A stretch of 62,961 nucleotides of DNA, the filler included, from Calcarisporiella thermophila CBS 279.70 (taxonomy: Eukaryota; Fungi; Calcarisporiellomycota): assembly GCF_041956535.1 (NCBI RefSeq). It is 5 parts of 5 records of this genome, joined end to end, with 100 filler letters (N's around TTAATTAATTAA, not from the genome) between each part and the next. Parts side by side here need not be neighbours in the genome. Positions count along the whole stretch, not along the records: positions 1 to 25,082 come from NW_027192195.1; 4 more parts are not named here. One strand, 5' to 3'. Numbering within the stretch: the first letter of the stretch is position 1; each line of letters opens with the position of its first letter. The translations under genes were made by a program, and so were the position numbers. Positions 99 to 23,239 of this stretch are shown here, piece after piece. The notes beneath the pieces are model-generated. The model did no database searches. It had not been told where the DNA came from and worked only from the letters and a program-made list of their open reading frames with translations.

Positions 99-545
99 AT
101 GATGAAGGGGAAGATAATCGCTCCGAAGGAAACGAGAAGAAATCGGCGCACCATAAAACCCTTCCATGTCCATCGATTCCCAGACCCCAACCTCTGTCCA
201 GTAGAGTGCTTCATTGAATATAGGAGGCGCTGGCAAGAACAGGGTAAACTGCAACAAGGCTCAGAGGTATTCCTCTGCCCTGGAATCGCTTGCCCGGCGA
301 GGCCCGCAACGATTTCGCGATGGATCAAAACAATCTTTGCAATCGCCTCACCCGACGCAAGAGCCCATGACGCGCGGAAAACAGGGGCCACCCTCGCTCT
401 ACGAAGGTTCAATGTAGACACAGTGGTTGCAATAGGGAATTGGTCTTCCACCACTACCTTCGACCTATACTACCGCAGGGATAGAGCGGTAAATGCCGAT
501 ATCTCGGGCGCGCTTCTCTCCTTAGGACTCGAGGAAGCGCGCTAG
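99..545 (+). CDS. Tyrosine recombinase of DIRS element (C-terminal part; likely begins before the window)
   Basis: LCPVEC, HDARKTGAT (H-x-x-R box II) and GNWSSTTTFDLYY (W...F..YY with the catalytic Tyr) motifs. Confidence 0.88.
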   Translation: MMKGKIIAPKETRRNRRTIKPFHVHRFPDPNLCPVECFIEYRRRWQEQGKLQQGSEVFLCPGIACPARPATISRWIKTIFAIASPDARAHDARKTGATLALRRFNVDTVVAIGNWSSTTTFDLYYRRDRAVNADISGALLSLGLEEAR

Positions 546-1698: not shown

Positions 1699-2451
1699 TT
1701 ACTCTCTGCAATTGTAGCATTTTCCGAATCTTTGGAACTTTTGCTTTTGCCTGAAATTCGTTGTTCTTTTACGAGAAACGTTATTGTGTTCCATCGACAT
1801 CGTACCATTATCGTCTTCTGCATTCTGACTACATCCTTCGCTTTTATCAGTGTATGATGAAAGAGTCTTGCCCCAATTGATAGCAGCGTCATAAGAAACC
1901 GCTAATTTAATGGCCTCTTCAAGGGATTTCGGCAATCCCGCGATGACTTGTGTCCTCACTCTGGGTTTTAATCCGTTGATGAACATAGTCATTGTCATTA
2001 TATCACCGAAGGAATCCAGTTGTCCAAGGATGATGCGGAACTGGAAGACATAATCCTGAATGCTTTTAGTTTGTCGAAGCATCTTCAATTGATTACATAG
2101 GGACATTTGGTAATCAGCACGTTCGAAAGCCGCAATAAGTTTGTTGCCAAAAGCTTGCCATTCTTTTGGTGTATCTTTCATCAACTTGTTTGATTGATAC
2201 CACTGTTGAGCGGTGTCTCTCAAGTACGATGCAGCTGTTGCGACCCTCCGTTGATCGGGGATTCCCATCGCTTCGAATATTGTGTCAACTTGCCGAACCC
2301 AACTTCGCGCATTCTCCCCATCTCGACCATGGAACAGTGGCAAAGGAATTGAGATAAAACCTTCTTTGGAATTTTGCAAAGTATTTGAAACTATCTTCTC
2401 AATAAGGGTAGCCAGCTGCTTTAGGATGTCTTCGAGAGAGTTTTGATCCAT
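1699..2451 (-). CDS. Ty3/gypsy gag (capsid domain plus truncated CCHC zinc knuckle)
   Basis: LPLFHG...W...AASYLRDTAQQW...LRQTKSIQDYVFQF...FINGLKP retrotransposon gag pattern, ending KCYNCRE* (knuckle cut by a stop). Confidence 0.9.
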   Translation of the reverse strand: MDQNSLEDILKQLATLIEKIVSNTLQNSKEGFISIPLPLFHGRDGENARSWVRQVDTIFEAMGIPDQRRVATAASYLRDTAQQWYQSNKLMKDTPKEWQAFGNKLIAAFERADYQMSLCNQLKMLRQTKSIQDYVFQFRIILGQLDSFGDIMTMTMFINGLKPRVRTQVIAGLPKSLEEAIKLAVSYDAAINWGKTLSSYTDKSEGCSQNAEDDNGTMSMEHNNVSRKRTTNFRQKQKFQRFGKCYNCRE

Positions 2452-2796: not shown

Positions 2797-3183
2797 CGTA
2801 TTTATAATTTAAGAGAACAACGTTGTGGCTAATGGCTCTGACAGAGTGGCTATGATACAAATAAGGTTATGAAACAAGATAAAGGTTGAGATTGGTCAGC
2901 ATAAAGAATGTCGTGGTGTCCTGTGTAAATCCACAATAGAATGTATCTTCTTACAAAAATATTCTTACAAACATATACTGTATATAAATAAAAATGTAAA
3001 CGTAAATATGATGCGCTCATAAATTGCGAGGCTGTTGGAGCTATATATCGCTTCTCTCATTTTGGCAGGTACTAATTGATTAACCTTTTTTTTTCAGAGT
3101 TGATGGAAAATAAAACATCTGAATTAGTGTATCTTATAGCAAATCAATAGAAGGGTTGTATTGAAAATGAATTGGAGTTCTAT

Positions 3184-6100
3184 TTACCTACCTATTAAAA
3201 ATGATCAAATGGCGCAAATGAGAAATAGATCCCATTTGTATCTAGCAAAATGAATTGGCTTAGTTACAGGCTAATAAATTTAAATGAATGGTATGAATGA
3301 GTATATTCCATCAGTATTCAGTAGAATGGATGCAATTAGTATGAAAAAGAGTTTTACTTACTGCCTATTAGTGTTAATGGAATGGCACAGATGTGGAATA
3401 TGTTCCATCAGAATTCAATAGAATGGACGCACTTATTGTAGAACAGGGTGCCACTTACGGACTATTCGAGATAAGCAAATGGCATATACGAGGAATATAT
3501 TCCATTAGCATTCAACTCATTGACAGCGTGGAGTGTGTAATGGTGCGCTACTTACAGACTATTCAAGATAAGTGGGTGGCAGATGGATAGCAGAGAGATA
3601 TGTTTCATCAGTATTCAGTAGAAAGGATTCCATTAGCATTTAATTCATGGACTGCGTTGACGTGTGGAATAGAGTACTACTCACGGGCTATTCAAGTTAA
3701 ACGAATGGCACAAATGAGGCATATATTCAATTAGCATTCAATACATTGGCTGCGTTGAGTGTGGGATAGAGAGTTACTTACAGTCTATTAGAGATAAGCG
3801 AATGGTACAAACGGGGAAGATATTCCATTAGCATGCTATACATCGAATGCGTTGAGTGTGGGAGGGATAGCTACTTACTGACTATTCAAGATAAGCGAAT
3901 AGCACAAATGAGAGATATATTCCATTAGCATTCAACACATTGATTGCGATGGGTGTGGAATGGAATGTTACTTACTGGCTATTCGAGATAATCGGATGAC
4001 ACATATGAGAAATATGCTCCATCAGTATTCAGTAGAATGAATGCTATGTTAGTATGAAATGGAGTGCTCCTTACGTCCTATTCAATATAAGCAAATGGCA
4101 CAAATAAGAAATACGTTCCATCAGTATTCGGTAGAAAGGATGAAATTAGTGTGGAATGAAGTGTTACCGCCTATTAGGGATAAGCAGGTGACAGAAATGA
4201 GAAATATGTTCCATCAGAGTTCAATAGAATGGATGCACTTAATGTGGAAAAGAGTGCTACTTACCAACTATTCAAGATAAGCGAATAGCACGGATGAGAA
4301 ATATATTCAATTCAACACATTGGCTGCGATGAATGTGGAAAAGGGCGCTACTTACGGACTATTCAAGGTAAGTGGACGGCACAATTGAGAAATATGCTCC
4401 ATTAGTACTCAGTATATAGGATGCATTTAGCGTGGAAAAGAGTACTACTTACTGGCTATTCAAAATAAGCGAATGGCACAAACGAGGTATATATTCCATT
4501 AGTATTCAATACATTGACCGCGTTGAGCATTGAATGTGTGCTACTTACAGCCTATTATATATTAGCAAATGGCACAAATGAGGCATATATTCCATTAGCA
4601 TTCAGTACTTTTAATTAGTTGAGTGTGGAATGGAAAGCTACTTACCAACTATTTAAGATAAGCGAATGGAACAAATGAGGCATATATTCTCTTAGCATTC
4701 AATACACTGAATGCATTGAGTTTGGAATGAGCGCTACTTACCAACTATTTAAGATAAGCGAATGGCACAAATGAGAGATATATTCCATTAGCATTCAATA
4801 CACTGAATGCATTGAGTGTGGAAAGGTGGGCGACTTACCAGCTATTCAGGATAAACAAATGGCATAAATGAGACATATATTCAATTAGAATTCAATACAT
4901 TGACTGCGTTGAGTGTGGAATAGAGCGCTACTTACGGACTGTTCAAGATAAGCAAATGGCATATGAGGAATATATTCCATCAGTGTTCAGTATAATGAAT
5001 GCATTTAGTATAGAATCGAGCGCTACTTACCAACTATTCAAGATAATCAAATGGCACAAAAAATAAGTGTCTTCCATTAGTGTTCAATTGAAAAGATGAA
5101 ATTAGCGTGGAATGGAGTATTACCGCCTATTAAGGATAAATAGATGGCATAAATGAGGGATATATTCTATCAGTATTTAGCAGAATGGATGCACTTTGTG
5201 TGGAATCGAGTGCTACTTACCGACTATTCAAGTGAATGGCACAAATGAAAAATATATTCCATTAGCATTCAATTTATTGACTACGTTGAGCGTGGAATGG
5301 AGAGCCACTTACGGACTGTTCAAAATAAGCGGATGGCACAAATATATGTGACATATATTCAATTTAGCATTAACACTTTGAGCGCATTGAATGCGGAGTG
5401 GAGTGTTACTTACTTGCTATTCAAGATAAACAAATGGCACAAATGAGACATATATTCACATATATTCAAACCATTAGCATTCAATAAATTGAATGCGTTG
5501 TGAAATGAGTGCTACTTACAGCCTATTAGATATAAACGAATGGCACAAGTGGGGAAAATGTTCAAATCAGCATTCGGTACATTGAATGCGTTGGGTATGG
5601 AATGGAGATCCACTTACCGACTATTCAAGTTAAGCAAATGGCACATATGAGGAATATATTCCATCAGAATTCAGTAGAAATGATGTATTATGAGTATTAC
5701 TTACGGGCTATTCAAGATAAACGAATGGTACAAATGAGACATATATCCAATTAGCATCCTATACATCAATTGCGTTGAATGTGGAATGGAGCGATACTTA
5801 CATCCTGTCAGAGATAAGCGAACGGCACAAACGAGAAATATATTCGATTAGCATTCAATACATCGACTGCGTTGAGTGTGAAATGGAGAGCTACTTACCG
5901 ACTATTTAAGCAAAGCAAACGGCACATATAAGGAATTTACTCCATTAGCATCCAATACATCGACTTTGTTGAGTGTGGAATGGAGTGTTACTTACCGACT
6001 ATTCGAGATAAATGAATGGCACAAATAGGGAATATATTCCATTAACATCCAATACATTGGCTGCGTTGAATGTGGAATAGAAGGCTACTTACGGTCTATT

Positions 6101-8879
6101 CAAGATAAACGAATGGAATAAATAAGAAATGTATTCCGTTAGCATTCAATCCATTGACTGCGTGGAGTGTGTAATGGTGTATTACTTACTGCCTATTGGG
6201 GATAAACAAATTGCACAAATGAGAAATATATTCCATTGGCACTCAATCCATTGACTGCAACGATTGTGGAGAGCCACTTACCGACTATTCAAGGAAAATG
6301 AATGGCACAGAAGAGAAATATATTCCGTTAGCGTTCTATACATTGATTGCGCTGAGGGTGAAGTGGCGTGTTACTTACCAACTATCCAAGATAAACAAAT
6401 TGTCGTCGATGTGGAGTAGATTCCATTAGCTTCCAATTCATTGATTGCGCTGAACGTGGAATGGAGAGCTACTTACGGCCTATTAGAGATAGGCATATGG
6501 AACAAATGGAAAATTTATTCTATTAGCATCCAGCAGCATAGATGCGCTTAGTGAGAAGTGGCATGCTACTTACCGGCTATTAGAGGCAAGCGAGTGGCAC
6601 AATTGAGGAATATATTCCTTTAGCATTCAACCCATTGACTGTGCTGAGTGTGAAATAAAGCGCTACTTACGGTCTATTCATGATAAACGAAATGTACAAA
6701 TAGGAAATATATTCCTTTAGCATTCAAATCATTGATTGCGTTAAGTGAGAAATGGAATACTACTCACTGCCTATTGGTAATAAAAGAATGGCACAAATGT
6801 GAAATATATCTCATTAGCATCCAACAGAATGAGTGTGCATAAAGGTGAAATGTAGTGCTACTTACATTCTATTCAAGGTAACCAGATGACACCAGTGCAA
6901 AGTACACTCCATTAGCATTTAATAAAAGGACCGCGCTGAACATAGAATGGAATACTACTTACGGGCTTGATAAGATAAAAGAAAGGTACCAATGAGGAAT
7001 ATATTCCATTAGCATCCAACAGAATGAATGTGCTTAATCGAGATCAGAGTGCTACTTACGGACTATTTAAGAGAAAAGAATAGCACCAGTGAGAAAAAAA
7101 GTTTCATTAGCATTAAGTAAGATAGAAGTACTTAATGTGGTATAGAGTGTTACTTACCGCCTATTAGAGATAGATGAATGGCACAAATAGGAGTGAGAAA
7201 TAATATTCTATTAATTTTCAATACATTGACCACGCTGAATGTGAAATGGATTGCTACTTACGGTCTACTCAAGATAAACAAATGGCACAAATGAGAAACA
7301 AGCTCCATTAGTAGTCTGGACACTGACTGTATATAGTGTGTAGCACAGTGCTACTTACCGTCTATTAGAGACAAGTGGATGGAACAAGCAAGAAGAGCAT
7401 ACCATTAGCATCCAATTGGCCAACCGTAGCAATGATTTAAAGTGACAACCTTTACCGGCTATTAAAGATAAAAGTGTGACAAATATATAAGACACGCTCC
7501 ATCAGAATATATAAGGATTGCTACTATCATAGTAGAATGCGATTATACTTACGAGCTTGTTAAGATAAACGAGTGGCACAAATAGGAAATATTTTAGCAC
7601 TCTGTGGAATGAAAATGTGCACAAAATAGTATTGCTCACGTTCTATAAAAAAATGAATGGGATATATGAGAAATATATTCCATTATCATTCAGCAAAATG
7701 GATGCACTTAGCGTAGCATGGGGTGATACTTACTGGCTGTTTGAGCTAAGCGATTGACACGCATGGGAAATATTTTCCATTAACATCCAGCAGAATGGAT
7801 GGGATTAGTGTGGAGTGGAGGGTTACTTACGGGCTTGTTAAGATAAACGAGTGACACCAATGCGAAATATATTCCATTAGCATTTTATGCATTGACTGCA
7901 TTGAATGTGAAATGGATTGCTACTTACGGTCTACTCGAGATAAACAAATGGCACAAATGAGAAACAAGCTCCATTAATAGTCTGGACACTGACTGCATAT
8001 AGTGAGGAGCGCAGTGCTACTTACCGTCTATTAGAGACAAGTGAATGGAACAAGCAAGAAGAGCATACCATTAGCATCCAATTGGCCAGCCGTAGCTATG
8101 ATTTAAACTGACAACCTTTACCGGCTATAAAAAATCAAAGCGTAGCAAAAATATGAGACATGACCCATCTGAATATACTAGGATTGCTACTATCATAGTG
8201 CAGTGTGGTGATACTTACTGTCTAATTAATGTGAACCAATAGTGTAAATGAATTGGAGTACATCCCATTAACGATTAACGTGATTGCGTCTTTATAATGT
8301 ATAAAGTACATACCGCCTATTTAAAGTAAACAAATGACAGGGATTGCCCAAACGCCTCCTTAGCAATCAATAGTAGACATTTTCATCTTGAAAAATTGAA
8401 ACTCACGCTCTTTTGACGGCAATGATACGCGCAAAATTATGGGCAAAAATTAGCATCAAAGTATGAATGGATGAAAAGGTGTCATGATAGTTACTTTCTA
8501 TATGCAATGGGTGACACGGTTAGTAGCAGTAGAATACATCTAAATTAATTGATAAAATGGTTCATGTCTAGTCAACTAGGGGCTACTTACCAACTGATTC
8601 ATTGGCACAATTGCAGAGGGAAAATGAGGTGAAGTCATCCGTTAGTTCTCAATTTAATAACTGCTCACGCGTAATAACAATACATACAGGCTAATTGTGC
8701 GAATGAATTTTGGACGTAGAATGCAAGTTAATCGCGGTGGAATATTAGGCAGCAATGGATCTCGAAATACCTGGCTCTTGTATCATTTCAGCCTCGAGTT
8801 TGGGGATGATGCTAGCCGTTGCAAGCTGCTGGATTGCGCAAACAACCACGATACTGACCGTCAATTTGACAAGCTGCAT
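3184..8879 (-). CDS. Secreted prepropeptide (95 aa) encoded by exon 1 (8879-8771), 57 three-nucleotide microexons (8690-8688 down to 3270-3268) and a terminal exon (3191-3184)
   Basis: Each repeat unit reads ...(T/C/A)AG|NNN|GT(A/G)... on the minus strand. Joining the NNNs to exon 1 gives an uninterrupted ORF with a signal peptide, KR site and amphipathic C-terminus. 42 of 57 junction codons end in C. The exact 3' end (CR*) is less certain than the rest. Confidence 0.88.
3192..8770 (-). repeat. Tandem array of 58 ~94-nt spliceosomal introns, mostly homologous to one another (period ~97 bp)
   Basis: Approximate minus-strand consensus GTAAGTAGCACTCCATTCCACACTCAACGCAGTCAATGTATTGAATGCTAATGGAATATATTTCTCATTTGTGCCATTCGCTTATCTTGAATAG (donor, GCTAAT branch site, pyrimidine-rich tract, acceptor). 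Confidence 0.93.
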
Positions 8880-9059
8880 TTTGGGTGATTGCGCTTTCTA
8901 GTAAATGGGGGGTTAGTTAGTTTGTCGACGGCGTTGGAAACCAGCGGCTGGGGAAAATGAGACGAGGAAAGGAAATGGCGCGCCTCTCCACGGCCCTTAT
9001 ATCCCTCATATTTGCCGAGGCGAGGTGCTGCTCGAGTGCCGGCTGCAGTTGGAGAAAAT

Positions 9060-9480
9060 CTTGTTTCGAGCGTATTTCGATTGACGATCGATCCCTGAGG
9101 CGGACATGAAACATCCAATCTTCAACCACCTCCGAAACTCTTCCCATTCGCAGTGCCCTATCCACGTGGAGGCCCCTCTGATTGGACCCTAGCGTTGATA
9201 TTGATGCACGTGGAGCGAAGAGAGAAGAGGCCGCGCAAGCTGCGCAGAGGGGCCGGCGGCGGTGCAGCCAACGAAGGATACTTGCTGCACCGGCTTCGAG
9301 AGAGCGCAAACCGGAATGGACGAGCAAGCTCGGCTCTCTTGCATTTCCCAAATCGAAATAGCCAATAGCTCTGCTGCTGCTCCTCCGCTTTGGCCTCTGT
9401 GCTTGTCCGGCATCAGCGGATAGCCCATGAATCCTAGAGCAGTGCACGCCGCTTGAACAGCTTGCCACGTGAGCATCAGC
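9060..9480. repeat. GC-rich sequence of unknown nature, homologous to ~36300-36745
   Basis: Collinear shared blocks: TTTCGAGCG..., GCTCTCTTGC.TTTCCCAA.TCGAA, GCTGCTGCTCCTCC, GTGCACG.CG.TTG..CAGCTTGC. Confidence 0.65.
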
Positions 9481-9904: not shown

Positions 9905-10890
9905 ATGTGAAAAGAAGAAAACGAGCCGTCCTATTACAAATAAGGGATTATCCAGCAGAGAGACCTCGCGCCAGTTTGGGGTGAGTTACTATATCGTCAA
10001 CAAATATCGTAGATTATGCACTTCAGAATCTTCTTAACCAGTCTCTGGTTGTCCACGTGTTCTCACTGAGAGTCAAGAGGAAGTCCTCGTACGAATTTTC
10101 AAGGCTGGAATATATGAGAATACACTAGACGCAAAGAAACATCTTGAAGAAGATTAAAATGCCAATTTGTCAGTGACCTCTGTAAGGAACGCATTGAAGT
10201 GAAACCAAATAAGCTCGAGATCTTGTGGAAAAAAGTCGTTTTTGGAAGCTAGCCATAGGAAAGCCCGACTATCCTTTGCACGTAAATATCGAAATTGGAG
10301 TTTATATAACTGGAAGCGTGTCATATGGTCAGATGAAAGCATATAGAGTGTTCAGTACAGGTAGGAGAAGATATTATTGGAAGGCTACAGGCGATACTAT
10401 ACGCGAGCATCATTTCAAAAATACAGTCAAGCACGGTAATGGTTCGGTTACCGTGTGGCCATGCATCACTTAGAAATTGGGTTTATGTGCCGAATCGAGA
10501 AGGGACTAGATGCACAACTTTACCAGAATATTTTAGGAGATGAATTAATGAGAACGCTAGATTGGTATGACCTCGACAAGAATCAAATTATTTTCCAGCA
10601 TGATAATGATCCTAAGCATACCACGCGTAGTACAGTGGAATGGCTAGCAAACCACGATATTAATGTACTAGGACGGCCAGCTCAGTCTCCTGAATGAGTT
10701 CATGTGGGATGAATTGGACAGAAGAATCGAAAATCGTGAGCAACAGCCGACTAATGCCCAGTCACTTTGGGATATACTACAGAAAGAGTGTGAGAAGATA
10801 GAACCAGAGTTGTGCGCTAAAGTTATAGGCACATTGCTATGGTGTCTAGAGGCGGTGATAAAAGCAAAGGGTGCTCATACAAGATCTTGC
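9905..10890 (+). mobile_element. Tc1/mariner (DD34E-type) transposase pseudogene
   Basis: Frameshifted fragments WKRVIWSDES, TVKHGNGSVTVWPC, IFQHDNDPKHT, PAQSP, KAKGAHT. Confidence 0.9.
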
Positions 10891-11366: not shown

Positions 11367-13108
11367 ATGGGTCAACTGCTGTTGAGTACACTAGTAGTAA
11401 CCTTGTGGGTACACTCTATCAATACATCCCCCGTCCTCAAATGTCGCTGCCTGCCCAAAGATCCATGTTGGCCAGATACTACAGCGTGGGATCGGTTTAA
11501 TACAACTCTCGGGGGACGTCTACTCGCCACTTTTCCGCCTGCGTACCCTTGCCATGACCCTCATTATGACGAAGCCGCATGTAATGTGGTCAAAAAACAA
11601 TGGAATAATCCTTTATGGCGAATTGACCAGGCTGGTGCGATGCAATATGAGACCTGGGAGGTAGATAATAATGCAAACTGCTCGTCGAACACAAATCGCA
11701 CTTCTCCATGCCATCAAGGCTCCATCCCAGAGTATTCTGTAGATGTCTCGGACCGTGCGGATATACAACACGCCGTGAGGTTTGCTGCCAACAACCGACT
11801 ACGTCTTACCGTCAAAAATACCGGGCACGACTTTCTTGGGCGAAGCACGGCACCAGGTTCACTAAGTATTTGGACTCATCATCTCAAAAATATCACCTTT
11901 CATGAGTCCTTCGACGCTAGCGGCTGCACCAAGGGAGTATCTGCAGTTACGTTAGGAGCCGGCGTTGAATGGGGCGAAGCATACGAAGCAGTGAGCAAGC
12001 ACAACATGGAAATAGTGGGGGGGCAATCTTTTACGGTTGGTGCAGCAGGTGGATATGCTCAGGGTGGAGGTCACAGTCCGCTTGGTCCTAAGTATGGTAT
12101 GAGACCGGACAACGTCCTTCAGATGGAGGTTGTGACGGCGGACGGAGAGCTGCGAATCGCCAATGCTTGCCAGAATAAGGACCTTTTCTGGGCCTTGTGT
12201 GGAGGAGGAGGAGGTACGTTTGGTGTTGTGACGAGTGTAACCTATCGAACGTATCCTTCAAATCGTTATTCGGGCGCCATTTACAACGTCCAAATCGGCA
12301 ACGCATCATACCAAGACCTTCTGCGCGATATTCTACTTTTGCAACCTGCTCTCTCTGATGCAGGCTGGTCTGGCAACTTGGCAATCTCGACAAATCCATT
12401 TTTATTTTCTACCTGACCAGCTCCTCAGCCGCCAACGCTTCTTTCCAGCAACACATTGCCTCGCTTGTACAAAAACATCCTGGAGCCCTCTTCACGGGCA
12501 AGTTGCAAGATTTCCCCACCTACCTCGATTGGCTGCGCTCTGCTATTTGGCTTCAAAGCCCGGATCCCGCTGGCAATTGCACCATCGTAGGGGGTGATAA
12601 TATTCTTATGGGATCTCGTCTAATTCCACGCAGCAATCTCGAGAGTAAATCTTCCGCGACTGAGCTTGCCCGTGTCCTCCTTCAAACCATGGCAACGCTT
12701 CCACCCAACAGCCCGCTTGGGTTAGGACTCCTTGGTGGAGGTGAAGTAGCGCGTAATGGTGGAATCAATGCCGTCAATCCCGCATGGCGTAAATCCCTCT
12801 TGCATACCCTCTACATGATATCCTGGCCCGAAAACTCTTCCAATCAAAAGCAAAACGAGGTAGCCTCTGACATCACCAGAGTTATACAGCCACTTCGTGA
12901 TCTCATCCCTGACTCGGGCTGCTATGCCAATGAGGCCGATCCAAATGAACCCAATTGGCAGCAGGCCTTCTACGGTGACAATTACTCGCGCCTCAAAACT
13001 ATTAAGAATCAAGTGGATCCGACCGGCCTGTTTGTGTGTCGCAAATGCGTGGGCAGTGAAGACTGGTCCGAAGACTTAAACTGTCCTAGATACTCAATAT
13101 CGCAATAG
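11367..13108 (+). pseudogene. Secreted FAD-linked oxidase (berberine-bridge-enzyme-like), split by one frameshift near 12390-12415
   Basis: Signal peptide, CRCLPKDPCWP, KNTGHDFLGRS (covalent FAD His), GGGHSPLG, GGGGGTFGVVT and C-terminal GCYANEAD/FYGDNYSRL/VDPTGLF. The second frame continues FYLTSSSAANASF...QDFPTY with no evident intron. Confidence 0.85.
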
Positions 13109-16522: not shown

Positions 16523-17224
16523 TTATTTCGGGGTATTAGCGAATGGATCCCATGTGGGATCTTTATGAGGCACATACTCCATGAAATCACTGACCAATTT
16601 CGCCGTCGTCTCGTTATATATCTTTCCAATGAGGTAGTTGGTCAGATCCATGCCCGCCTGAACTCCTGAGCTAGTGAGGATGTTTCCATCCTCCACCCAG
16701 CGCGCACTGCGGACCCACTTAACATTAGGCCGTTGTTGCGAGACCCAATCAAACGCCCTTTTGTTAGAGGTCGCCATTTTGCCGTCCAATAGACCTGTCT
16801 TTGCAACTAATGCCGAGCCCGTACACACGGTCATTAAGTATTCCAACTTGGGGTATGTTTGCTTGATGAAATCGAGGAGCACAGTGTCGTTGATCGATGA
16901 CCATGTGCCGATTCCTCCAGGAACCATGAGGATATCAAGGTTGGGGGCGCTGTTGAACGAGTGGGTTGCAAAAACACTCTGTCCAATCACTGACGGAAAG
17001 TTAGGCGGGACTGCACTTACAGGTCCAACCTCGTGGGAGATAACTGAAACGCTCAGGTTGGTAGGATTGACGGCCGAGAGCAAGTTCCAATATTCCAGCG
17101 GACCAAAGACATCGAGAACCTCGAATCCAGGGTAGACAATCACACCGACGGAACGGGAGTGGACGCCAGTTGATAGCACAGCGACTAGCGCCAAAGTCAG
17201 CAGGAAATTCCGGAGACACTTCAT
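16523..17224 (-). CDS. DJ-1/PfpI (ThiJ) family protein with N-terminal signal peptide
   Basis: YPGFEVLDVFGP, DILMVPGG, VCTGS nucleophile elbow, ARWVEDGNILTSSGV. Intronless, with a hydrophobic leader. Confidence 0.92.
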   Translation of the reverse strand: MKCLRNFLLTLALVAVLSTGVHSRSVGVIVYPGFEVLDVFGPLEYWNLLSAVNPTNLSVSVISHEVGPVSAVPPNFPSVIGQSVFATHSFNSAPNLDILMVPGGIGTWSSINDTVLLDFIKQTYPKLEYLMTVCTGSALVAKTGLLDGKMATSNKRAFDWVSQQRPNVKWVRSARWVEDGNILTSSGVQAGMDLTNYLIGKIYNETTAKLVSDFMEYVPHKDPTWDPFANTPK

Positions 17225-18812: not shown

Positions 18813-19308
18813 AAAAGCGTAAATGCTCATAAGCCACACATTGCATGCCGATTAAAGAGCTTTGGTATTCTGTTTATTAAAATTGTTAATGTCTTTCTAT
18901 GTTATTTCATCGACTCCTCTTCCGAATAATATTCAACTTGTATGTATATTCTAGGAATATTTCAGATACTCTCTAGCCAAATTATACGGAAAAGCAATGA
19001 ACAATAGATCCTTATGCACAGGAGATTTGCGCAAAGATTCGAATTTTATTTCGATACTTTGGTGTTGGTGAAAACTTGAATATATTATATTATGGGTTAT
19101 GTATATACTTAGGGGATAATTTGGAATCAATGCATTCATAACGACCTATATATACCCGAAACTACATGTATATTGGCAATATATATGAGGTAAGTTTAGA
19201 ACCAAGCCATAGAGAGTTTACATTTATTTAATATCATCCTATATTTCACCCTCTAATCATTTGTGAAATTGAAACAGGAAGTAAACCAGATTAAAGTATT
19301 CGTTCAAT

Positions 19309-20638
19309 TTAAAGAGATAAATCGATAACAGCTCGGAAACGTAGCTTATTCGCCATCATTTCATCAAATGCAGTTTGAGCCTGATCAAGTGAATATTTCT
19401 TTATCATCGGCTTGCATCCAGTTAATTTGGAGAATTTAGCACATTCTTCGGAATCCTATTTACAGTGAATATTCATGCATCAAAGGTTAGCCTTTTATAG
19501 TCAAGATTGCTATTAAAACATCCCTGGTTATTAATACCTTTGCAACACCTGAATACCATCCCAGGACTTTTGCCCGTTTTTTAATAAGCATTGCTGCCTC
19601 AATGTTCAATGGTTCCAATGGTACGGCCGCTACGAGAAGTGTGCCATTTGTCGCGAGGCATTTTACTAGGGGCGAAATTGAATCAGCATGTGGAGCTGTA
19701 GCGATAACTAGGTTTGCGCCACCAAGCTTGTTAATTTCAGCAATCGCATCAACTTGCGATTGATTAATGTATGTATGAGCGCCAAGCTTCGTAGCGAGCT
19801 CTCGCTTTGAATCGCTGGTGGATAATACGACAGTAATGAAACCCATTTGACGTGCGTACTGAATGGCTAGATGTCCTAATCCTCCAACGCCTTGAATTGC
19901 ACATACATCCCCAGGTCGAAGTCCGGCATTACGCATGCCATTATAAACAGTGACACCGGCACAGAGCAAGGGCGCAATTTCAACTGGATCCATATCTTCA
20001 GGGCAGACAGCTACGGCTATAAAAATGCATTAATAGAATAAAATTGAGACTAGTGTCATATACGATAGACAAACGGTGAAATCCTAATTCTTACCATCCT
20101 CTCTCGCAATCATGTACTCTGCATAGCCACCATCAAAGGTTAATCCAGTTACAAATTCTTTTTCACACGCGAAATACTGGCCCGCACGACACATATCACA
20201 GGTGAAACAGTTACCACCTACCAGGTAAATGAACTTCAATTAAAATCTCTAAAGAATACGACAATCCCCACAGAGCCCAATAGATTAAGTTCTGTATCTC
20301 GCAACTATTTATTCCTTGTCCCCACTCCCACCCCCCTTTTCTTTTGTCTTCACCAGAGTTAAAAATTACATACCATGCCAGCCGACTCCAACCAAGGTTC
20401 CTTCACGCAACCTATCTGCTACTCGTGGACCACGTTTCGCGATACGTCCGCATACCTCATGGCCAGGTATTCTTGGATAAGATTTTGCCATTCCGGCTAA
20501 AACGGCCACATCGGAATGACACACCCCACATGCTAAGACTTTTATGAGAACTTCATGTTCACCAGGAGTAGGAATTGGACGTTTGGCGACTTGAAAAGGT
20601 TGATTCGGACCAGGAACTTCAACAACTTTCATAGACAT
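19309..20638 (-). CDS. Zinc-dependent alcohol dehydrogenase (MDR family), 4 exons
   Basis: CGVCHSD, GHEVCG, structural-zinc exon (GNCFTCDMCRAGQYFAC), PLLCAGVT, GVGGLG. GT-AG introns at ~20218-20373, ~20017-20094 and ~19456-19537. Confidence 0.93.
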
Positions 20639-22918
20639 CCTAATAATTGTAACGCAACAGAAATGAATGAAAGTGACGAGAGAACCTTGCCAGAAAATCT
20701 CTTTATATAACAATTTAATCAGTAAGTCACATAGGTTATCAGTTCACTAGTTTATTCCCATAATGCGCCAAGGTATTGCGCCTCTTGAGAGGCCGAAATT
20801 TGGATAAAATTTCTCACAAGAACTCGCATTGGCAAATCAAACTGTGCACTTTCTACATGTTTTCCGAATTAAGTATATTGGATTTTAAATTTTATACTGT
20901 GTGGTCTAAAACCCCGGTAGTAAAAATGGATGATGTAATCCGGATATGGAAAAATCCAAAAATGAAATTTACCATGTAAAAAGGCTGCATGTAAATTGAT
21001 ATTGCATATTTTACGTATCAAGCTTCCATCCTTCATTTTTCTCCTATATCACGTATGGTACACTGTCCATTACATATTATCTGTTAAGCCTCAAGTCCTT
21101 GTATTTAATTTATCCAACGTTATACTTCAGGTTTAGATTTAATTATTAACCTAATAGTTTTCCTCATTATTGAAAGTGAAAATGTTGAATTTAATATAAT
21201 ACGTTCAACATTTGAAGTAGAGTGATTATTTAACAAAAGCGTTGCAACATAATGCAGTTGTCAATTAAATAGTGTACATCATTTGGGATGTAAATTAAGG
21301 AGTTTACCATAGCCGGCAATGTTCAGCAAGCTTCTTAAAATTAGTATATATTATCGTATTAAGATATCCCGCTGACCTACATACAAAGTATCCAATAGCT
21401 ACATTTAAAAATCTGATTGAATTGAACTGGTTTCCAATATAGGTTCATTTAGTGAAAACTTCAGCTCAGCAACTAAATGTATTGAAAGGCTATCTATGAT
21501 ATAGTGGATTTTTAAATAGCAATTGGGCAAAAATTCAGATATCATTGAGAAACAAACGCTGTGTTACCTAATGAGCTTGAAAAGCTAGATGTTTGAAGCA
21601 CAATTTTTTATTGATGCCATTCAGGTATAATTTCTTTTGTAAAAATACCCATGATGAAATTGAATTTCCACTCACCACCCCATCCTAAACCAAGTACTAA
21701 TTCGTGGAACACCTCGAATATGAAAGGAAAATAAGCAATAGTTCGAATACTAATTTCATGTGAGGAAATTCTCACTTATCGTCGAGACCAAACTTAAGGC
21801 CTTCAGCTATTTTTTCTACAAAGAAAAATTTAAGCTCCGAAAGAGCCCGCAAGAGAAGCTATGACACGATTTCTAATAGGGCATTGGCTTAACTTTAAAC
21901 ATGGTTTGAATAGCAAACCTTGTATTAGTAACATTTAGTTGGTCTCTGTAAATCAACTTGGTGTTACTATTGCAATTCTCCCATCTAAGCAAGTTTTCCA
22001 TCGTGAAAATATATGTAAGTCTAAAAATTAGCCAAAATTTTATTTCTAGTTTGCCTGGTAAAAGAGATCCCGCTTAGCAAAACTTATTTCAGTATGAAAG
22101 GCTTAATTGAAAGTGAAGAGAAGTACATATCCTACACCTTTATTTTAATCAGAATCTTTAGAATTATCAAATTGCTGTTCTTTATTTTGAGTAGTATACT
22201 CTGGTTAATTATATTTTATCTAATTATATATGATAAAATTGCTTGCCAAAATATAAAAAATAATCTGATTCAATGTTACATAGGCTATTATAAATAATAG
22301 GAGAGCTATCTCACAATCTTCTGATAATGCTATCTCTGATTTTAACGCGCTGTATTATCAAATCATCTATTAAATGAGCCCTTACAAAAAATTTGTTTTT
22401 TTTTTCAAACATTTCAATTATATCGACTCTGTTACTGATTTAATACTTATCCGAACAACTTAATACTATCTCAAAGTGCCTCCTTGTAAATAATTAGGAT
22501 ATAATAATAAGCGAGTTGGGGGAGAATAAATGAAGGTTTTCTCTATTAATAAAACTTTCGGACATGGATGCTGATTATACTAATACAATCTAGCCCCTTT
22601 CGTCTATGATGATGAAAGCTCAGAATTGTCTAAATGGATCGAATGAATGATATCATACAGGAGGTATGATGTCACCAGAGAACACAATGAGGTAGCACGA
22701 AATAAAGTTGTCTAAATATACAAATATAAAATAATAAGTGTGATTACAATATAATATAATAGAGCCAATAATTTTGTTAATTATTTTTTTTGCGATGTAA
22801 TTATGTGGCTTTTAATATTTATATAAGAATGTGGCAAGATATTAAAACAATCAATTTGCAATTCTTTTAGGCTTGAAGAAATGATCTTAATTTCTTTTCT
22901 TTTCTTTTCTCAATTTTA

Positions 22919-23239
22919 TTAAGAACACTCACTGGGGACCACGCATTTATCAACCTTCTCATCTAATAATAATCCTTCTTCGCAAATACATGCTAGCTGG
23001 CAATCCTCCGTACAAGGTATAGGTTTTTTGAGGAGATGTTGATTTTTGCAAGACGGAAAGCAATCAGCAGTACCGCTTACGCACCCATATATTCGTTGAG
23101 GTTTAAGTAAGCAAGCTCTTTCTCTTTCACTTATTCCATTAATTAAAGAATCGGCATTGAGCCGCACAACGACGCCCCCGACAAATAAGATATAAAATGA
23201 TAGAATAATAACAAATTTCAATAGTCTGATTAGATACAT
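22919..23239 (-). CDS. Secreted TIL (trypsin-inhibitor-like, 10-Cys) domain protein
   Basis: Hydrophobic leader, then C-x9-C-x6-C-x3-C-x11-C-x3-C-x3-C-x-C-x12-C-x5-C spacing ending CICEEG...CVVPSEC. Confidence 0.85.
   Translation of the reverse strand: MYLIRLLKFVIILSFYILFVGGVVVRLNADSLINGISERERACLLKPQRIYGCVSGTADCFPSCKNQHLLKKPIPCTEDCQLACICEEGLLLDEKVDKCVVPSECS

Follow-up and report, generated by a model that had tools for sequence, protein, structure and literature searches.

We analyzed a window of 62,961 nt joined end to end from five parts of the genome of Calcarisporiella thermophila, a thermophilic member of the Mucoromycota (PMC11393059), and found in its first part (NW_027192195.1, positions 1 to 25,082; all coordinates count along the whole window) an array of 57 consecutive 3-nt exons lying between 58 introns on the minus strand, from 8690 down to 3268. 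Judged from its sequence, the array is very likely a functional gene for a secreted peptide. Such a gene stands near the limit of exon–intron structure, in that 58 codons in a row are each interrupted by an intron. An earlier note on this DNA had proposed the gene; a minus-strand parse recovered exactly the 57 triplets in the order it gave, exon 1 at 8879–8771, and 58 phase-1 GT–AG introns. Three observations carry the assignment, namely the anatomy of the sequence, a coding signature in the triplets, and a match to paralogues.

Anatomy of the microexon array

The coding part of exon 1 (8771–8879, minus strand; 109 nt, 36 codons plus one G) ends in phase 1 and encodes a signal-peptide-like N terminus and the start of a pro-peptide. 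Intron 1 (8691–8770, 80 nt) is the positional orthologue of intron 1 in a second array paralogue at C5:783139. Microexons 1 to 5 with introns 2 to 5 (8314–8690) provide the end of the pro-peptide, AFEKR, with its Kex2-type KR site; these are older introns whose position is conserved between paralogues. By repeat parse and translation, microexons 6 to 57 (3268–8221) lie in tandem intron–exon units of ~97 nt and encode the mature peptide. The splice parse then gives intron 58 (3192–3267, 76 nt) and a terminal coding exon (3184–3191) that, in a model of 95 aa, ends in Cys-Arg-stop, all on the minus strand. All 58 introns begin with GT, end with AG, and are in phase 1; they measure 76 to 126 nt with a mode of 94. 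The donor is GTAAGT in 44 of the 58, the acceptors are TAG (49), CAG (5), and AAG (4), and a branch motif, CTAAT or CTGAT, stands 44 nt upstream of most acceptors. The pattern AG-NNN-GTRAGT has 47 matches in the window, all of them on the minus strand within the array, against 1.0 ± 0.9 expected. The spliced join is 288 nt long and, as had been proposed, has no internal stop.

Tandem Repeats Finder calls the array a 97-bp satellite with 70% matches. Its intron–exon units are only ~72% alike, so the array is not an assembly expansion. Introns 8 and 9 match introns 15 and 16 at 94 to 96% identity, and triplets 7 to 9 equal triplets 14 to 16; this is a recent internal block duplication (7262–8124, minus strand).

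The 3′ end of the gene is ambiguous. The 8-nt terminal exon of the earlier note fits the 95-aa model, but a decayed unit 59 begins inside it, at 3187, and leaves the end uncertain. This unit (3072–3187, minus strand) aligns to the unit consensus with a score of 61, where 500 shuffles reached at most 49.5, and has kept its donor. Splicing to a distal AG at 3072 would remove a 116-nt intron after a 4-nt exon and join an alternative last exon of 31 nt (3041–3071, minus strand), for a product of 104 rather than 95 aa with a third Cys. We regard the 95-aa form as about twice as probable, because unit 59 has lost its own acceptor.

Upstream, 123 nt before the ATG, lies a TATA-like box (8997–9002, minus strand) of putative function. 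In five paralogues a TATA- or AATAAA-like box is found between −120 and −134, and in the C7 copy at −114. The public gene model, VTP21DRAFT_9095, contains spurious exons farther upstream and runs on from exon 1 into intron 1, so that the array is unannotated; the expectation that gene prediction would miss this gene was correct.

Evidence that the triplets code

Nine paralogues of exon 1, 42 to 67% identical, occur in the same genome, the paralogues being named proteins of Calcarisporiella thermophila. Two are intronless, and in these the end of the pro-peptide (VFEKR in VTP21DRAFT_733, ALEKR in VTP21DRAFT_5961) follows directly after the exon 1 region. Triplets 1 to 5 of the array, which read AFEKR, agree with the VFEKR paralogue at 12 of 15 bases (P 1.6e-4) and with the ALEKR paralogue at 10 of 15 (P 1.4e-3), each measured against random triplets of the array, whereas read-through into the intron matches at just 6 and 5 of 15 bases, respectively. 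The triplets of the C5:783139 paralogue give VLEERA, and its introns 1, 2, 4, and 5 match those of the window gene by position.

The paralogues also bear on the reading frame. Shifted by one base, so that each triplet is a codon, the array would encode a Ser/Thr/Pro/Ala-rich, mucin-like stalk; this frame is also stop-free, the middle base is C in 42 of 57 triplets, and the arrays outside the Glomeromycota that could be phased (see below) are in phase 0. We consider it highly improbable for the window gene, where exon 1 ends in phase 1 at its sole GT donor, no later exon alters the phase, and triplets 1 to 5 fit the intronless paralogues in phase 1 only.

The second line of evidence is the pattern of divergence among units. 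At bases 1 and 3 of the triplet (codon positions 2 and 1) the diversity is 0.71 to 0.76 and exceeds that of each of the 94 intron columns, while triplet base 2, the wobble position, resembles an intron column (0.39 to 0.43). In pairs of units whose introns are 21 to 34% different, triplet bases 1 and 3 differ in 72 to 77%. Only five columns are invariant, those of the GT, the AG, and the branch A, and the remaining columns deviate from consensus by 23%. Constancy of the four splice bases has P ~1e-24 under neutrality, a value that overstates independence since the units are related. Over all 58 introns, the final 30 nt contain 3 AG in total.

These patterns are what a noncoding origin has to account for. 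Perhaps just the first few microexons code and the remainder is an unspliced, intron-derived minisatellite, either a recent pseudogene or a 3′ untranslated region. Several paralogues are indeed decayed or truncated, those on C29, C8, C33, and C16 with broken splice sites, and concerted evolution is able to keep motifs in satellites. A neutral minisatellite should nevertheless diverge regardless of splice site and codon position, and this one does not: the GT and AG are intact in 58 of 58 introns beside columns 23% off consensus, and variability within the unit is highest at the two triplet bases that change the amino acid, which is unexpected for a noncoding satellite. We therefore hold this origin to be unlikely. 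A structured RNA or CRISPR array was also considered and rejected; there was no Rfam match and no consensus fold, and the whole unit is homologous and diverged.

Several points weigh against a functional secreted-peptide gene. A query for RNA sequencing runs over 8760–9060 listed none, which does not mean that none exist. The stop-free frame of this array is uninformative, weak as evidence, in that 66% of column shuffles are likewise stop-free, and absence of stops was dropped as proof of coding for this gene (P 0.66 by column shuffle). Homologue searches with exon 1 and the intronless paralogues found no spliced product of the array in protein collections; they returned just four annotated family members of C. 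thermophila and none outside this genome. Exon 1 and the paralogues had no Pfam match, and Atlas and PDB gave nothing usable. With no outside homologue and no Pfam match, the function of the peptide is a guess. The predicted signal peptide and Kex2 cleavage come from inspection by eye, and we infer transcription, the order of splicing, exon skipping, cleavage, and function from sequence. Finally, 58 splicing events per transcript may leave few complete mRNAs.

Paralogue history and growth of the array

The proposed history is growth by unequal crossing-over of intron–exon units. Each unit gained or lost would add or remove one residue, with the frame kept and a hybrid codon possible at the joint, and selection would have diversified or protected the exon bases while the introns were homogenized. 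An alternative is repeated insertion of a mobile intron (introner), copy by copy, into an intronless coding sequence. The introns are mutually related, intronless paralogues exist, and three orphan units lie at C16:212328–212650. Against this, the spacing is exactly 3 nt in a single phase 57 times over, the block duplication is visible, and searches of the own genome, whose counts are lower bounds, matched units to this family and its fragments only, with no dispersed copies in ordinary genes. In an exon-1 tree, midpoint-rooted and with most forks unresolved, the intronless pair groups with the intron-bearing C33 copy (support 94/96), and distant members retain intron 1. This topology suggests that the intronless copies arose by intron loss, through cDNA, and we judge repeated insertion very unlikely. 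Base composition is only suggestive of a retrocopy origin: G occupies 1 of 51 fourfold sites in the C24 copy and 0 of 39 in the array, against 20 to 26% in two neighbors, but 3 of 33 in the C10 copy, which is A-rich.

Three paralogous arrays run into N stretches of 1.4 to 4.4 kb, which sit exactly inside the arrays (C5:779533–782402, C54:11080–15481, and C30:183853–185298) and may be assembly gaps. The C30 copy has no exon 1 and begins after a perfect inverted repeat.

The predicted peptide and its family

The N terminus encoded by exon 1 is hydrophobic and signal-peptide-like over about codons 1 to 22, by eye. The KR at residues 40–41 is present in both intronless paralogues. Cleavage there would free a mature part of 54 aa and 5.5 kDa, with 17 acidic, Pro-rich residues followed by a Gly/Val/Leu-rich amphipathic stretch (grand average of hydropathy 1.05) between two Cys. 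A known kind of secreted fungal peptide processed by Kex2 has a conserved pre-pro region and a variable mature part. The window gene appears to share this plan, with a predicted signal, an acidic pro-piece, the KR, and a mature peptide that varies across the family; it differs in having no sequence match to any such family and no repeated KR-delimited units. In other family members the mature parts that follow this pre-pro cassette are unrelated, and two of these are Cys-rich. Peptides for antagonism or recognition typically combine a conserved leader with hypervariable cargo, and by this analogy the product is most likely a fast-evolving extracellular amphipathic peptide for antagonism or for surface or non-self interactions.

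The paralogues with Cys-rich mature peptides are at C17:310746 (L032:547–1118) and C7:1241244 (L035). The C17 paralogue has exons of 9 nt and 3 nt, a GC donor following the 3-nt exon, and is absent among annotated proteins.

A proposed route of splicing

We propose that this is a spliceosomal gene for a secreted pre-pro-peptide, in which exon 1 would supply the signal and most of the pro-peptide, and the 57 microexons, each made of bases 2 and 3 of one codon and base 1 of the next, would supply the AFEKR end and the mature peptide. In fungi, short introns are recognized by intron definition, which does not require the size of the exon to be sensed. The short introns of the array would probably be removed in this way, roughly 5′ to 3′; with the 5′ intron removed first, each triplet would become the last part of a long exon upstream. 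The branch point stands 44 nt before the acceptor, with an AG-free zone between them, a placement that may give neighboring spliceosomes room. A long distance from branch point to acceptor has a parallel in vertebrate microexons (PMC12871342). A conserved hairpin between branch point and acceptor was considered and rejected, since there was no consensus fold (mean z −0.7).

All exons are symmetrical, so skipping would keep the frame, and in-frame variants are to be expected, as reported for the nank genes of the truffle Tuber. It is a real possibility, though short of an even chance, that in the same gene the full 57-exon join is rare and the locus mostly makes a library of in-frame skipped isoforms. 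This would modify the best explanation rather than exclude it. Just 11 of 1653 possible skip junctions create a stop (99.3% are stop-free), and such behavior has been published for the Tuber arrays. On the other side, donors are strong throughout, the C-rich middle base also explains the low risk of stops, and the full join has coherent zones, an acidic head and an amphipathic core bracketed by two Cys. The gene makes questions of minimum exon size and of splicing order testable in a culturable fungus.

Comparison with known genes

The earlier note knew of no gene built almost only of 3-nt exons, a statement that is not supported, as arrays in Tuber nank genes are published (PMC4986451, PMC3689799, PMC9815663, PMC13449251). 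According to Iotti et al. 2012, as cited in PMC4986451, PMC3689799, and PMC9815663, the NACHT-ANK genes of Tuber melanosporum have dozens of alternatively spliced 3-bp mini-exons, and a 2026 paper lists these among lineage-specific strategies (PMC13449251). Both designs place tens of consecutive 3-bp exons in a fungal coding gene and are fit for in-frame diversification. Unlike nank, an intracellular NLR, the window gene would encode a small secreted pre-pro-peptide of 95 aa with no NACHT or ankyrin domain; its array accounts for 57 of the 96 codon junctions and for the entire mature peptide, and splits codons in phase 1. It belongs to the Mucoromycota rather than the Ascomycota, and alternative splicing of mini-exons, a feature of nank, is only predicted for it. 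What is new relative to Tuber is the predicted secreted Kex2-type peptide, the split codons, and the occurrence in Mucoromycota; a design known from one truffle NLR family now extends to a secreted peptide in another phylum. In a literature search whose coverage leaves most subscription journals outside, no such array turned up for secreted peptides, for Mucoromycota, or for Glomeromycota.

Other systems are more distant. The micro-exon genes of Schistosoma mansoni have 10 to 20 exons, mostly of 15 bp (6 to 81 bp in the text, 3 to 81 in the abstract), and introns of 0.1 to 5 kb (PMC10526429). They too encode small secreted proteins, place an array of multiple-of-three exons after a signal exon, and are missed by automatic annotation. 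The window gene differs in its 57 exons of exactly 3 nt, its tandem introns of ~94 nt, and its fungal host, and no sequence relation is expected. In Coprinopsis cinerea, spliced exons of 1 to 3 nt occur in 89 gene models, with 27 three-nt exons in 26 genes (PMC12230235), as single microexons within ordinary genes and not in arrays.

Similar arrays in other fungi and in metagenomes

The earlier note had taken this for a gene class and suggested scanning for periodic AG-NNN-GTRAG; the class proved larger than claimed. Using three successive AG-NNN-donor units as the pattern, we scanned metagenome contigs, prokaryote genomes, and viral contigs. The metagenomes gave at least 120 matches. After filtering, at least 46 further loci remained, with 8 to 48 units, triplets that vary, and in most cases a branch motif; 45 of them are metagenome contigs, and one is a contig (L193, JBOFTB010000114.1) from a Mycoplasma-labeled bin. 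The latter, a variable-triplet array with donor and acceptor motifs at a GC content of 0.20, is probably eukaryotic contamination. Matches in prokaryotes were almost all invariant-triplet repeats, mostly CRISPR-like cyanobacterial arrays; those with AG-GGA-GTAAGT (L173–L216) were the main false positives of the pattern. The scan of viral contigs gave none. Stop triplets are depleted in the 46 arrays (4 against 39 ± 5), which we discounted as evidence, because AG-TAA-GT and AG-TGA-GT create competing donors, chain scoring may bias the count, and the arrays of arbuscular mycorrhizal fungi are not in phase 0.

Most of the at least 46 arrays lie beside exons for non-self recognition, signaling, or signal peptides. 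Their neighbors include PNP_UDP, winged-helix, and ankyrin exons (L107), ankyrin (L067), NACHT (L075), HET (L091, L082, L076), and kinases (L131). Across L091, L082, L076, L107, L067, L075, L085, and L142, arrays stand at the N terminus of a HET gene, among ankyrin repeats, after NACHT, or after a GTPase-like exon set, the last by eye. Three loci (L143 at 2799–3737, L108, and L157) follow the plan of the window gene, a signal peptide and a pro-piece ending in R and then an array, here in phase 0; L136 and L163 are likewise arrays of secreted-peptide type, not cleanly modeled. AT-rich arrays (GC content 0.15 to 0.26) occur in L053, L068, L087, L099, L103, L114, L129, L131, L146, and L156. In L053, L068, L129, and L131 the array is followed by an exon with the start of a kinase of Glomeromycota type, and in L068, L146, and L156 nearly every triplet has T as its middle base. 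The named proteins most related to the L131 kinase come from Rhizophagus and Glomus, and the hosts of the GC-richer contigs are placed by fungal-type domains only.

A named genome has such a locus as well. In Rhizophagus clarus (GCA_015698045.1; L221:1857–11344, BLAL01000176.1), 67 microexons (66 of 3 nt and one of 6), a count that probably misses a few units, separate an annotated SPRY/TPR gene from an annotated kinase (RclHR1_10840004). Joined in phase 2 they contain 0 stops, against 6 and 7 in the other frames and an expectation of 3.4 by order shuffle (P 0.007) or 8.5 by column shuffle. The two annotated genes look like one, joined by unannotated microexons. Reference annotations appear wrong at both loci checked, the C. 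thermophila model ending in intron 1 and the R. clarus SPRY-TPR-kinase gene being split in two.

Among arrays phased by their flanks, L107, L091, L143, L108, and L157 are in phase 0, the window gene and L053 in phase 1, and L131 and R. clarus in phase 2. The occurrence of all three phases points to several independent origins, and the pattern scan suggests that codon–exon arrays are not lineage-specific to Tuber. We see about an even chance that they form a general, repeatedly evolved module of fungal diversity, changing length by single residues and making peptide libraries by skipping. The module would serve NLRs, HET-domain proteins, kinases of arbuscular mycorrhizal fungi, and secreted peptides, and would span Dikarya, Glomeromycota, and Mucoromycota. 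Such arrays would be missing from annotations because they are satellite-like, break assemblies, and defeat spliced aligners. The apparent spread of the design, unannotated, over fungal lineages and gene types is a larger result than the single gene, and a so far hidden layer of variable receptors and peptides in fungi, if true, would bear on fungal immunity and mycorrhizal symbiosis.

Neighboring sequences in the window

At least 480 nt downstream of the gene lies a Ty3/gypsy gag remnant (1699–2451, minus strand; Pfam Ty3_capsid). Farther on, an open reading frame at 99–545 (plus strand) and 590–985 resembles by eye the C terminus of a tyrosine recombinase, with no Pfam match, beside an inverted repeat, and is likely a mobile-element remnant. 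On the upstream side there are broken pieces of a Tc1/mariner-like transposase (10225–10697, plus strand; by eye), and a similar element interrupts the array of the C8 paralogue. Beyond these lie genes for a secreted FAD-binding/BBE oxidoreductase (11367–13108, plus strand) in two frames, with a break near 12416–12503 that is an intron or a frameshift, a secreted DJ-1/PfpI protein (16523–17224, minus strand), a zinc alcohol dehydrogenase with three introns (19300–20640, minus strand), and a small secreted TIL-domain protein (22919–23239, minus strand).

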